From sequence record AP017925.1: 64,000 bases of DNA; one strand, written 5' to 3'. This document shows, one piece after another, positions 3,476 through 54,892 of the stretch; the first letter of the stretch is position 1, and each line of letters opens with the position of its first letter. A program made the translations under genes and the position numbers. The notes beneath the pieces were generated by a model. The model ran no database searches. It was given only the letters and a program-made list of their open reading frames with translations, and was not told where the DNA came from.

Positions 3476-4777
3476 TTACCGTGCCTTCGAAACCGCGATC
3501 GACTTCTGGACGTAACGCACGTAGTTGGTCGAGTTCTGCAGATTCAGACGCAGCAGTTGCGGGATCACCGCAGTCGCTACCGTCGTCAGAACCTTCAGAT
3601 ATACCGCCGCGTACTTCGAAGCAGCTTCACCTTCAGCAACCTTGGCAAAACCTTCGATCTTCTGCAGACGATCTTCCAGTGCCTTCTGGTCATCGGCCCA
3701 ACGGACGATCAGATCCAGCATGTTCTTTGCCAGATGCGGATCGGCCACCACGATGGTGTCGTCGTCAACGATTTCCGGCTGCTTCGGAGACAGCCCTGCT
3801 TTCAGATACGACTTCTCGCTGATCGGAGCGGAGTACGCCAGATACAGACGCACACCGCCGATCATCGGCTCAGTCAGACTGACGCGCAGCTGCTGGCCTT
3901 CCGGCAGTTCCGGTTTTTCAGCCAAATCGCTAGCGACTCCGGGCTCGTCGAAGACGTGCTGCTGCAGACCCTTCAGAACCTTTGCGGTGTTCTCGAAGAT
4001 GGCCAGCTGATCGCTGTTCGAACCCTTCTGAGACAGTTCGTTCAGGCTCGAAACGAACGCATCATTGAAGAAGCCGTACAGGGTCTTCGTAGCCAGAGCA
4101 CCGTAGGCTTTGAATTGCTGATTAGCATCGCCGCGGTCAGCAACCAAGCGCAGGGACTTGATGAACTTCTCGTCTTCGATAACGAGGCCGGAGTTGATGG
4201 AACCGACTTGCGGGATCAACTTCTTGGCCTCTTCGGCGACGTTCATGGAACGGGACAGGATCTTGCGAATCAAGCCGACGATCCAGGCAACGATGCGCTT
4301 AGCGGCAGCAGCCAGTCGAGCCAAGATTTCCTTGGACTTGGACTTGGCTGCATCACCAACAGCTTCGGTTTGTTCAGCAGCGGAAGCATCAGCGGCGCCG
4401 TCCTCCAAAGCCGAGACCGGATTGGGAATCTTCGCACGTGCGCAGATCTGCTCCAGACCAAAAGCCAGCGATGCTACGCTAGCCTTGTTGGCCTGACCTG
4501 ACTTAACGGTCATCTCGCAGATGTGAGCCAGCTCTTCGAGCGCAGCAACGGCTTTGTTGGCTTCCGCCAAATCGCCCTGCATCTCATCGCCAGCTTCAGC
4601 GATCGCGTCGGTATCGTTCTCGAAGCACTCATCGCGCAGTTCTGCATTCTCGGCATCCATCGTTGCGTTCTGCTGTTGCAGTTCAGCAACGCTGTCTTGC
4701 GGAGTAATGCTGGTCTCCGTTACCGCACCCGTCTCCAATCCTTCGAGTGCGGCAGAGATGTAAAGATTACGTTTCAT
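3476..4777 (-). CDS. internal head protein paralog
   Basis: N-terminal SAALEGLE and internal SALED sites; close paralog of 4787-6226. Confidence 0.75.
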   Translation of the reverse strand: MKRNLYISAALEGLETGAVTETSITPQDSVAELQQQNATMDAENAELRDECFENDTDAIAEAGDEMQGDLAEANKAVAALEELAHICEMTVKSGQANKASVASLAFGLEQICARAKIPNPVSALEDGAADASAAEQTEAVGDAAKSKSKEILARLAAAAKRIVAWIVGLIRKILSRSMNVAEEAKKLIPQVGSINSGLVIEDEKFIKSLRLVADRGDANQQFKAYGALATKTLYGFFNDAFVSSLNELSQKGSNSDQLAIFENTAKVLKGLQQHVFDEPGVASDLAEKPELPEGQQLRVSLTEPMIGGVRLYLAYSAPISEKSYLKAGLSPKQPEIVDDDTIVVADPHLAKNMLDLIVRWADDQKALEDRLQKIEGFAKVAEGEAASKYAAVYLKVLTTVATAVIPQLLRLNLQNSTNYVRYVQKSIAVSKAR

Positions 4778-31954: not shown

Positions 31955-32125
31955 TTAAACACCACCGCAGTCCGGACAGCAATCATAACCTACTGCACCA
32001 GGTCCATACATTTCTTCGTACGGGATCAAGGGCTTGGTTGAACCACAATACCCACACCGGTATTGGTAGACGGTATCCGTTTCTTTTTCCAAAGATGTTT
32101 CTTTTGTTTCGTGGTTCGTGCACAT
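31955..32125 (-). CDS. small zinc-ribbon protein (56 aa, absent from the ORF track)
   Basis: Manual translation MCTNHETKETSLEKETDTVYQYRCGYCGSTKPLIPYEEMYGPGAVGYDCCPDCGGV; CxxC...CPxC; AGGAAGG SD. Confidence 0.6.
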   Translation of the reverse strand: MCTNHETKETSLEKETDTVYQYRCGYCGSTKPLIPYEEMYGPGAVGYDCCPDCGGV

Positions 32126-32254
32126 GCTGGTTCCCTTCCTATTTAGAATTAGAATTTAAACCATATCCGTTTATGGTTCACACTGAGTATATGTGGTTGA
32201 AATAAATTTCATTTAACCGGCATAAAGGGAGGGCCGAAGCCCTCCCCTCGTTAC

Positions 32255-32821
32255 TTAGTACGGAAAATCAGCCTTCTTGATCTTCACCATGCGACCATCA
32301 GCGTGATGCCACACGATGCCCTCAATCGGCTTATCACTCAGGTAGTCCATCAGTTCATTAAAGCTGCGCGGGCAATCCACCAGCACGTCTTCTCCGTGAG
32401 GCACTAGCACGTGTTCAGTGAGTTGCTCCGGATTGGCTCCATGACGAGTACCAATCTTCGGACCACACACTTCATACGTCCCGTCAGGCACGCCTTGCGG
32501 ATACCTAGAGACCGCTTTGTCGATCGCTTCACGGATATAAACGGAGTCAGGACCAGTAGCAGGCACCCAACCCGGCCAGTGTCCACTGATAGGGTCCGGA
32601 TTAGGCTGAGCAGGAACAAAGTCTAGAGGCGGAGTACGCCCAGTCTTTGCATCGTAACGCTTAAACACATTACCTGCCTTAACCATAACAGCTACGCCAT
32701 CCCACTTACGAGTAGCACAGCCTTCCCCTTCCTGTACCCATTCTGCACCAGCACAGACTTCGTCACGAACTTTACGGTTACCTTCGTAGTTACGCTGAAA
32801 CAGCGAAATGATTTTCTTCAC
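32255..32821 (-). CDS. ATP-dependent RNA ligase-like nucleotidyltransferase (DUF5565 / RLIG1-C12orf29-like), GTG start
   Basis: Motif I RKWDG, GHWPGWVP, TYEVCGPK, LVPHG, motif IV EGIVWHH and motif V MVKIKK; GAAGGA SD before GTG 32821. Confidence 0.8.
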   Translation of the reverse strand: MKKIISLFQRNYEGNRKVRDEVCAGAEWVQEGEGCATRKWDGVAVMVKAGNVFKRYDAKTGRTPPLDFVPAQPNPDPISGHWPGWVPATGPDSVYIREAIDKAVSRYPQGVPDGTYEVCGPKIGTRHGANPEQLTEHVLVPHGEDVLVDCPRSFNELMDYLSDKPIEGIVWHHADGRMVKIKKADFPY

Positions 32822-32898
32822 GATACTTCCTTCGGTAGGTTTCGATAATTTTTCGAATCCCATCTCCACCACCGAAGTTACTTCTACTGCTACTGCCA

Positions 32899-32924
32899 GC
32901 ATAAGCGAGAGGTTTCCCTCCCGC
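32899..32924 (-). terminator. hairpin between tRNA-like RNA and ligase gene
   Basis: GCGGGAGGGAAACCTCTCGC followed by TTATGC on the minus strand. Confidence 0.6.
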
Positions 32925-32951
32925 CTACGGTTAGGTTGTTTGGTCATTGCT

Positions 32952-33130
32952 TTCTGAGGGAGGATTCGAACCTCCAATTTTGGTCTGAGACCGGACCCAA
33001 CGACAGGCCGACTGTGTTGCTGCGTCCGAGAACGCAACCCTTGCTAGAATTCACAGCCCTGCAGATTTCCTCTTCCAGCCCTAAGGCGTTCAAGTACAGT
33101 CCACGTGTATACCAATTCCACCACTCATCA
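32952..33130 (-). ncRNA. tRNA-like RNA with 102-nt insertion replacing the anticodon loop
   Basis: D-arm GTGGAATTGGTATACAC, anticodon stem TGGAC/GTCCG, 16-nt variable region, T-arm GGAGG-TTCGAAT-CCTCC, partial acceptor stem TGAG/CTCA, no CCA. Confidence 0.65.
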
Positions 33131-33187
33131 ACCTAACGGAGAGACCTACGGTTTCTCCCTATCAAATTAACCAACCCTGTAAAAAAG

Positions 33188-33487
33188 TTACATACTGGTC
33201 AAGATCTTCTCCGACAGCACCACGACCGGAGAATACATCTTGAGTGTCTTCTCATGGTCATTCCCTTCTTCGAGCTTCAGCTCGCTCAAGGTGTACTCGT
33301 TCTCGACCATGACCTCGACGTGGTCTTGCAACAGGTCTTTGATCATGGAGAGAATAGCAGTCTTGCCACTACCGATCTTTCCTTCGATCGTGATCTTTAC
33401 AATCGGCTTAGCATTGCCAGCCAACAGCACGTCATCAGCAAGACTGATGACAGGAGTCTGACGAACTGCGGGTTCTTGATTCTGCAT
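33188..33487 (-). CDS. small P-loop protein (kinase-like, short)
   Basis: ITIEGKIGSGKT Walker A as in nucleoside/nucleotide kinases; only 99 aa; AGGAG SD. Confidence 0.6.
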   Translation of the reverse strand: MQNQEPAVRQTPVISLADDVLLAGNAKPIVKITIEGKIGSGKTAILSMIKDLLQDHVEVMVENEYTLSELKLEEGNDHEKTLKMYSPVVVLSEKILTSM

Positions 33488-53993: not shown

Positions 53994-54061
53994 GATGGCT
54001 CTTCGGGTTATCGTTGATATCTATTCATGGAATGAACGGACGTGGTAAAAAAGCGCTGTGG

Positions 54062-54892
54062 TTACCAGCGCCTCAGATAGAGTCTGAGCTGTTCAGCAAG
54101 GAACTTATCCTTGATCTGGTTCAGCCCATAGTTGACCTTGTCCTGGCTCGTAGCAAAACTCCAGTTGTACTTCGTGCCAAGATCGACCAACGTCTTGCGG
54201 TAAGTCGCGCCAATCGGACGGAAAAGCTGACTATCGCCGAAGATGGACAGGAAACCCTCATGGAAAGGAATCATTGGCAGATCCTTGCCGTTGTAGAACT
54301 TCGTGTACCATCGACTCTTGTCCTTAATGTTACCCGTGTGGGATTCCAGTAGGGACAAGTTGCTGAACGCCTTGGTAGTCAAATCGTACGGATAGTGCGT
54401 CAACATCAAGGTGTTCGCAGACTGCGAATCAGTGATTTGCAGGGGATAAAGTTTGATCAGCTCCTTTTCGTTCTTGATGATCTGACCCAAGACCATCTGC
54501 AAGCTTTTGGCGAACAGTATCTGGTTAGGAGTGCTGTCAACGCGCAAAATCGCGTGAGGAAGACGCGATTCCAGACCGATATAGTCCGGACAATACAGAA
54601 CGGTCTTGAACTGATGTTGGCCTTGCTCGGCAGAAATCTCCAGATACGAATCCAGCTCATGCCGGAACGAATCGATCAGATCTTTCTGGTCGATCGCTGG
54701 AATGTTTTCCTTACCGATGGCTTCGTAATAGTTACGAAAGAGAGTTTTCACATTCACCCAGTGGCCGGAGAAGTCCTTCAACAACTTCGGACCAGCTGGG
54801 TGATCGGGATGGATACCGAGTGCGCCCTCTAAAGCCAACGACGTGGCAATAGACAGCGGAAAGTATCCAGTAGCGCGTTCGGATGCATTCAT
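54062..54892 (-). CDS. conserved protein, PIN/flap-endonuclease-like fold possible
   Basis: SIATSLALE and WVNVKTLFRN motifs; coupled to the SbcD-like gene. Confidence 0.5.
   Translation of the reverse strand: MNASERATGYFPLSIATSLALEGALGIHPDHPAGPKLLKDFSGHWVNVKTLFRNYYEAIGKENIPAIDQKDLIDSFRHELDSYLEISAEQGQHQFKTVLYCPDYIGLESRLPHAILRVDSTPNQILFAKSLQMVLGQIIKNEKELIKLYPLQITDSQSANTLMLTHYPYDLTTKAFSNLSLLESHTGNIKDKSRWYTKFYNGKDLPMIPFHEGFLSIFGDSQLFRPIGATYRKTLVDLGTKYNWSFATSQDKVNYGLNQIKDKFLAEQLRLYLRRW

Follow-up and report, generated by a model that had tools for sequence, protein, structure and literature searches.

A Minimal RLIG1-Family RNA Ligase of a Ralstonia Jumbo Phage and the Conserved Leader Hairpin That Covers Its Shine-Dalgarno Sequence

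Organization of the Locus and the Start of the Ligase Gene

The window analyzed here is a stretch of 64,000 nucleotides from sequence record AP017925.1, and it carries on its minus strand, at 32255..32821, the coding sequence of an RLIG1-family RNA ligase (188 codons plus TAA). The gene opens with a GTG codon at 32821 and ends with a TAA stop at 32257-32255; a Shine-Dalgarno sequence, GAAGGAAG, is found at 32833-32826, four bases ahead of the GTG. Over the 1.7 kb surrounding the gene, identity to Ralstonia phages RP12 and RP31 is 100%; these are PhiKZ-related jumbo phages of about 280 kb infecting Ralstonia solanacearum (PMC5468394). Judged by this match, the window would correspond to the last 64 kb of RP31, with its base 1 at RP31 base 212959. 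The first-pass annotation of this DNA had placed an open reading frame at this position and quoted six blocks from its product; the frame is indeed present, and all six blocks are found in the translation, namely RKWDG (residues 38-42), GHWPGWVP (80-87), TYEVCGPK (115-122), LVPHG (139-143), EGIVWHHADG (167-176) and MVKIKK (178-183).

The gene product is labeled “hypothetical protein” in the GenBank records and named “RNA ligase” in RefSeq, where the RP12 model (YP_009598952.1) is 215 residues long and starts at an ATG at 32902. The 81 extra upstream bases of this model (window 32822-32902, minus strand) overlap the conserved leader hairpin described below and have a counterpart in no homolog. 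FLC4-3B gp280, FLC9 gp221 and gp78 of mycobacteriophage Paola all have annotated starts that align with residue 1 of the shorter form, and about 90 homologs encoded on viral contigs or in bacterial genomes open with M/V-K-K-I-x-S-L-F at the same residue. Since all of these align to residue 1, the GTG start, which had already been chosen in the first pass, is judged from the alignments to be correct, and the 215-residue model to be too long.

Right after the stop codon, a GC-rich stem-loop with a short T run (32222..32247, minus strand) can be read from the sequence and would form a terminator-like end of the ligase gene; the shortness of this run explains why a simple terminator scan does not list it. 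The 390-nt gap between this terminator and an RNA polymerase subunit gene holds an unannotated 56-residue open reading frame (window 31955-32125, minus strand) with two CxxC pairs, which is zinc-ribbon-like and gave no significant family match. In two RP12-like metagenomic phages (comparison loci are cited here by their L numbers), the ligase and RNA polymerase subunit genes are separated by an inserted HNH_3 endonuclease gene (L012:4674-5645 and L015:3607-4590); RP12 and FLC4-3B have no HNH_3 gene there.

Family Membership, Fold and Catalytic Residues

The product had been proposed at first pass to be a homolog of RLIG1/C12orf29 (DUF5565), and both the family profile and the predicted structure bear this out. 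RLIG1 (PF17720, formerly DUF5565) is the sole Pfam match of the protein and lies above threshold, at 32.9 bits (E 4e-8) for a curated cut-off of 25, with an alignment that spans residues 123-183 only, that is, the C-terminal third. PHROG 14301 “RNA ligase” matches over the full length (E 6.5e-100), PHROG 562 matches weakly at motifs IV-V, and the NCBIfam profiles gave no match. When PDB sequences were searched with phmmer, “RNA ligase1” (9c6l/9c6m) was the only meaningful match (E 6e-4). An AF2 model built on an alignment of 68 relatives (pLDDT 93.4, pTM 0.85) has as its nearest fold the same solved RLIG1: when the PDB is searched with Foldseek, Yasminevirus RLIG1 chains (9c6m/9c6l) take all of the first ten places (best match E 7e-9, TM 0.77, probability 1.00), although sequence identity to this enzyme is about 20%. 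Next come the Naegleria RNA ligase and T4 Rnl1, with E of about 0.03-0.1, five to seven orders of magnitude weaker. The model displays the minimal ATP-grasp-like NTase fold, and at 188 residues the protein is too small for an extra domain.

The catalytic residues can be assigned motif by motif: K39 and D41 in motif I, R55 in Ia, E117 in III, H142 in IIIa, E167 in IV and K180/K182 in V. Motif I reads K39-W-D41-G42 in the phage and K73-T-D75-G in Yasminevirus; the lysine aligned to K39 is a methionine in 9c6m, which is the K73M mutant. In full, phage K39, D41, R55, E117, H142, E167 and K180 correspond to Yasminevirus K73, D75, R89, E174, H195, E240 and K253, and all seven are invariant in the alignment of 68 relatives. 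Mutating these seven Yasminevirus residues lowered both adenylylation and ligation (PMC11494293).

No Pfam match at E up to 1 was obtained for the T4 Rnl1 family (PF09511), nor did Pfam return the Rnl2/Rnl5 family (PF09414) or the ATP-dependent DNA ligase family (PF01068) for this protein, so that the earlier wording “rather than T4 Rnl1/Rnl2” stands. By sequence and model, the protein thus agrees with the RLIG1 family in every feature that can be examined in silico, and it appears to belong to none of the Rnl1, Rnl2/Rnl5 and DNA ligase families. This 188-residue protein is a new member of an already described family; the assignment was known in outline from RefSeq, PHROGs, Pfam and Hu et al. 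2024, and the central idea of the first-pass annotation is not new because it is contained in the latter work and in the RefSeq annotation. The newer observation is the conserved leader hairpin covering the Shine-Dalgarno sequence, not the identity of the ligase.

Comparison with Known RNA Ligases

Among characterized enzymes, the closest comparison is offered by the RLIG1 of Yasminevirus sp. GU-2018, which shares with the phage ligase its Pfam family, an NTase-only fold and the seven active-site residues. At 188 aa against 277 aa, the phage protein is smaller by about 90 residues; the N-terminal ~35 residues and one internal segment are missing from it. The two also differ in origin: Yasminevirus is a giant virus of amoebae, whereas the phage ligase comes from a bacteriophage. 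Human RLIG1/C12orf29 is the founding member of PF17720, whose threshold the phage protein passes. The human enzyme uses a KxDG lysine-AMP mechanism, joins 5′-phosphate and 3′-OH RNA ends, accepts tRNA as a substrate in vitro and has proposed roles in RNA maintenance under oxidative stress; it is far longer than the phage ligase, with an additional N-terminal stretch (aa 81-111) for which a regulatory role has been raised as a possibility. RLIG1 enzymes from humans, bacteria, a phage (“C. phage”) and a giant virus all join tRNA halves cut in the anticodon loop and bearing 5′-phosphate and 3′-OH ends (PMC11494293).

Full-length homologs of the same size are found within PHROG 14301 in phages, for example Paola gp78, Cellulophaga phage phi10:1 gp057 and FLC4-3B gp280; these are 39-68% identical to the phage ligase, belong to phages of other hosts with other genomic contexts, and have the leader hairpin in a subset only. 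T4 Rnl1, which together with T4 Pnk is the paradigm of phage repair of nuclease-cut tRNA, shares its three-step chemistry and end requirements with RLIG1-type ligases. However, its structural likeness to the phage ligase is weak (Foldseek E of about 0.1), as is the PHROG 562 match at motifs IV-V, its C-terminal RNA-binding domain is absent from the phage protein, and its Pnk partner has no counterpart found in RP12 by profile searches. The second-best structural neighbor is the Naegleria gruberi RNA ligase of the Rnl5 type, whose N-terminal OB domain and PF09414 domain are both absent from the RLIG1-type phage protein.

Distribution and Genomic Neighborhoods

A word-based database search returned 2,766 relatives, most of them about 185-205 residues long, and most of the 120 relatives listed carry a precomputed PF17720 assignment. 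Homologs occur in 45 viral contigs, many of 170-520 kb, and in named phages of Ralstonia, Burkholderia, Mycobacterium, Cellulophaga and Nocardia; among bacteria they are found in Roseateles (79% identity), Massilia and Pseudoduganella (65-70%) and further in Deinococcus, Rhodococcus, Streptomyces, Bacteroidota and Planctomycetota. With the ~190-residue form this abundant in bacteria and phages, the label “eukaryote-type” attached to the protein in the first pass is misleading and best taken as historical.

The nearest cellular copies of the ligase lie in Burkholderiales, the order of the host, and this suggests a recent exchange between Burkholderiales (or their prophages) and jumbo phages. 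Chromosomal copies in this order, 65-79% identical, are those of Roseateles and Rhizobacter (L069-L071) and of Massilia and Pseudoduganella (L073-L080); some of them retain the same leader motif.

At several loci the ligase gene is located inside or next to tRNA genes on the same strand, as in a 26-tRNA array (L098:1-5525), a group of six tRNAs (L056:43-1324), and beside tRNA-Ile (L090:2393-2467), tRNA-Ser (L078:2284-2373) and at L022:3391-3567. A published neighborhood analysis likewise reports tRNA genes as over-represented near DUF5565 (PMC10364804). At L080, only the 3′ part of a tRNA-Ser precedes the leader, as at an integration site. In the window itself, ARAGORN detects a 95-nt tRNA-Ser with anticodon AGA at 54044-54138 (plus strand); the genome paper gives only tRNA-Asn(GTT) for these phages.

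A Conserved Hairpin in the Ligase Leader

The 5′ leader of the ligase gene folds into a predicted hairpin (32826..32881, minus strand) that scores 72.5 bits with a covariance model and is backed by covariation and by folding and position statistics. In its outer helix, 32877-32869 pairs with 32838-32830, and the 3′ strand of this helix overlaps the Shine-Dalgarno sequence. The upper part is marked by a conserved core block, GGGAUUCGAAA, at 32861-32851, and across leaders it carries a GGGAYUCGAAA block; an alignment of upstream regions had brought out a conserved block of the form GG..GG..RYGGGAYUCGAAA. Of 84 non-identical ligase leaders, 22 have the core pattern 35-47 nt ahead of the start codon, for 0.08 expected. 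Other hairpins lie at L002:3944-3999, L005:3939-3994, L012:3940-3994, L026:2440-2495, L043:2437-2496, L069:2443-2496 and at more loci.

A covariance model seeded from RP31 and FLC4-3B was used to search 544 kb on both strands; all 18 of its real matches lie directly upstream of a ligase start, and it matched nowhere else in the window nor in the region of the RtcB and Rnl5-like genes. Across 151 Burkholderiales genomes, a second-round model strongly matched only the leader of the Roseateles ligase, with a further weak match to the antisense strand of one tRNA gene. Rfam 15 gave no match at E up to 1 in the window segment 31800-33800, and no Rfam family matched at the leaders of ten other loci.

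Folding statistics separate leaders with the motif from those without it: the median folding z against shuffles is -1.75 versus -0.40 (p 5e-5), and the number of paired bases in the Shine-Dalgarno zone is 8.9 of 12 versus 5.0 (p 8e-8). Cognate 5′ and 3′ arms pair at -15.6 kcal/mol and swapped arms at -11.1 kcal/mol (p 9e-5). On the alignment derived from the covariance model, 96.5% of cells in the 9-bp outer helix are paired, compared with 68.5% in shuffles and 25-58% in slid controls; each of its nine pairs changes on both sides, with 41 compensatory cells for 8.7 expected, counts that lean towards structure since the alignment was fitted to the covariance model. G-U pairs are frequent, which assigns the structure to the mRNA strand. 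RNAalifold predicted no pairs on plain MAFFT alignments of the leaders because the 3′ arms are misaligned there, and arm-swap energies and the covariance-model alignment were used instead.

In our reading, this hairpin sequesters the Shine-Dalgarno sequence, and its conserved upper part seems to resemble a tRNA minihelix. While the structure is backed by covariation, the regulation is what we infer from it: the hairpin would probably hold translation of the ligase in check. The further proposal that it constitutes a new cis-regulatory RNA class for RLIG1-type genes is possible but less likely than not. According to this proposal, the hairpin would resemble a tRNA acceptor/T-arm minihelix and keep the Shine-Dalgarno sequence paired, so that the ligase would be translated only once the hairpin opened; opening would result either from titration of the ligase (autoregulation via substrate mimicry) or from the very RNA-cutting activity whose damage is repaired, and the Y-RNA-like RNA found upstream in RP12-like phages would join the same RNA-repair module.

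A pairing of the leader with the 3′ end of a host tRNA, in the manner of a primer-binding site (PBS-like), was also considered because the strict pattern and the covariance model both match the reverse complement of true tRNA 3′ regions. This idea is not supported: in the Roseateles noduli genome, no tRNA 3′ end is complementary to the organism’s own leader within three mismatches, and the CCA complement is not universal.

Structured RNA and Reading Frame Upstream of the Leader

Between the leader and the preceding open reading frame lies a structured non-coding element of about 208 nt (32930..33137, minus strand) that is better conserved than the flanking proteins. A long-range helix closes the element (GUUAGG at 33137-33132 with CCUAAC at 32935-32930). 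Inside the element lie several hairpins that show compensatory changes, and a canonical-looking, tRNA-like T-arm at 32975-32959, GGAGG-UUCGAAU-CCUCC, whose counterpart in FLC4-3B is GAUGG-UUCGAAU-CCAUC. Twelve of its 68 predicted pairs keep pairing through double changes, a count drawn from three sequences only, and the element itself was found only in RP12/RP31, in FLC4-3B (L002, about 3670-3900) and in a metagenomic jumbo-phage contig (L021, about 2170-2400). It is possibly Y-RNA-like, and its association with the ligase is positional. At a distant ligase locus, L034, a sub-threshold YrlA/tRNA-like match occupies the same position.

Two ideas about this element were tried and rejected. A permuted tmRNA was considered because the T-arm is accompanied by ACCA and a downstream GGAUUCGA-like block, but inspection by eye gave no acceptor pairing, and both ARAGORN and Rfam were negative; ARAGORN reported no tRNA or tmRNA in this region of the window or at the FLC4-3B, FLC9 and RP12 loci. 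A Ro60/Rsr partner, as would suit a Y-RNA-like molecule, was also sought, and no TROVE domain was found in RP12.

A GC-rich hairpin (32903..32926, minus strand) sits between the structured RNA and the leader; it is kept in FLC4-3B, L021, L012 and L015 though the sequence of its stem differs, and it may be a terminator-like element or a structural spacer. The reading frame preceding the ligase (33188-33487, minus strand) encodes a 99-residue protein with a Walker A motif (phrog_33234), which was found solely in RP12-like phages, directly ahead of the ligase gene, and has two database relatives. It yields only weak P-loop matches and a poor AF2 model (pLDDT 62), and in one ortholog an alanine replaces the last glycine of the Walker A motif, giving a degenerate P-loop. 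This putative protein could be a kinase-like partner of the ligase.

Other RNA-Sealing Genes in the Phage

As judged from sequence matches, RP12 carries three RNA ligases. Besides the RLIG1-type enzyme, these are an RtcB, annotated “tRNA splicing ligase” (E 9e-129), and ORF209, a protein of 430 residues that combines a PHA02142 OB domain with PF09414 in the architecture of Rnl5/Naegleria ligases. The RtcB and Rnl5-like genes are located about 45-50 kb from the RLIG1-type gene, in a cluster (NC_041911.1 196759-203231; L011:6760-13232) that consists of the Rnl5-like gene, a nicotinamide phosphoribosyltransferase, a ribose-phosphate pyrophosphokinase and RtcB.

Six-frame family searches of RP12 found no PNK3P or polynucleotide kinase-phosphatase (Pnkp), and none gave a match to PF01068; such searches are weak for negatives, as they missed the PF09414 domain of ORF209 that hmmscan then found on the open reading frame. 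An AAA_33 match was considered as an end-healing partner and discarded, its best match being the annotated thymidylate kinase. Classical anticodon nucleases leave 5′-OH and cyclic phosphate ends. The RLIG1-type ligase alone could not seal such breaks, because no Pnkp was found in the phage; these ends are already covered by RtcB. The three ligases would split the end chemistries among them: RtcB would take 3′-phosphate or cyclic phosphate with 5′-OH, the Rnl5-like ligase nicks in duplex RNA, and the RLIG1-like ligase 5′-phosphate with 3′-OH. Without a healing enzyme, the latter would act on breaks made by metal-dependent nucleases or on ends healed by the host.

RP12 groups with chimalliviruses in a published PicA tree, and the RtcB homolog of the related phage RAY is cytoplasmic. 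By analogy, the location of the RAY protein fits a repair of RNA outside the phage nucleus. At first pass it had been reasoned that an RNA-repair ligase would be useful to a nucleus-forming phage, whose mRNA and tRNA stay exposed to RNA-targeting defenses in the cytoplasm; this rationale may apply here.

Proposed Function

We hold with good confidence that the gene encodes a minimal, NTase-only RLIG1 RNA ligase, predicted to seal broken RNA and with its translation probably checked by the leader. As deduced from the conserved residues and the fold of its homologs, K39 would attack ATP to form a ligase-AMP intermediate, the AMP would pass to the 5′-phosphate end of an RNA, and a 3′-OH end would then attack the activated 5′ end and seal the break. 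The likeliest substrates would be broken tRNAs or other structured RNAs in the cytoplasm of the infected cell, and the enzyme would have its role in RNA repair beside RtcB and the Rnl5-like ligase. For viral RLIG1, Hu et al. 2024 explicitly predict a role against host immunity like that of T4 Rnl1 (PMC11494293).

Could an active RLIG1-type enzyme serve the phage’s own RNA instead of counter-defense repair, by maturing or circularizing, for instance, the structured element upstream or phage tRNAs, or by leaving 5′-adenylylated (App-capped) ends? In RP12-like phages, the ~208-nt structured RNA that immediately precedes the gene on its strand would, together with the weak YrlA-like/tRNA-like match upstream of the ligase at L034, be in keeping with maturation; yet no more than three related phages have the structured RNA, against a ligase family of very wide distribution, and a permuted or split tRNA was not detected. 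As to capping, human RLIG1 forms Ap2N-capped RNA in vitro and accounts for about 20% of such cellular caps, but this capping is a minor and possibly abortive side reaction (PMC13598233). Both variants taken together, we regard this alternative as unlikely.

It is far less probable still that the protein is a DNA ligase or a DNA-repair nucleotidyltransferase. DNA ligases do share the covalent nucleotidyltransferase fold and its motifs, and a putative DNA ligase (3qwu) is among the low-ranking Foldseek matches (E 0.33); however, the top sequence and structure matches are all RNA ligases, the 188-residue protein has neither a Pfam DNA-ligase match nor an OB or DNA-binding domain, the phage has its DNA ligase in another gene, elsewhere in the genome (PMC5468394), and the RLIG1 family members assayed so far are RNA-specific (PMC11494293). 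Equally hard to sustain is the view of a catalytically dead or decaying relic carried by gene transfer, which could appeal to the two other RNA ligases of the phage and to the movement of the gene among very different genomic contexts, but which must contend with invariant catalytic residues, an intact frame, a confident model, a length and start kept over thousands of relatives, and a leader under purifying selection with compensatory changes.

Significance

For the gene itself, the ligase assignment mainly corrects annotation, that is, the gene start and the family name, with the precise name RLIG1 replacing “hypothetical protein” or the generic “RNA ligase”. For the family, first noticed in humans, the ~190-residue bacterial and phage form proves to be the dominant one; this form would be a convenient minimal model of the human enzyme. 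Experimental work could pay off for the leader hairpin, for the structured RNA upstream of it and for the set of three ligases. If the hairpin is regulatory, it would amount to translational control of an RNA-repair enzyme and would give a direct experimental handle on when such ligases are needed. For the phage, a chimallivirus-type jumbo phage with three RNA-sealing enzymes of complementary end chemistries next to NAD-salvage genes, the set of ligases points to a heavy investment in repairing RNA outside the phage nucleus.
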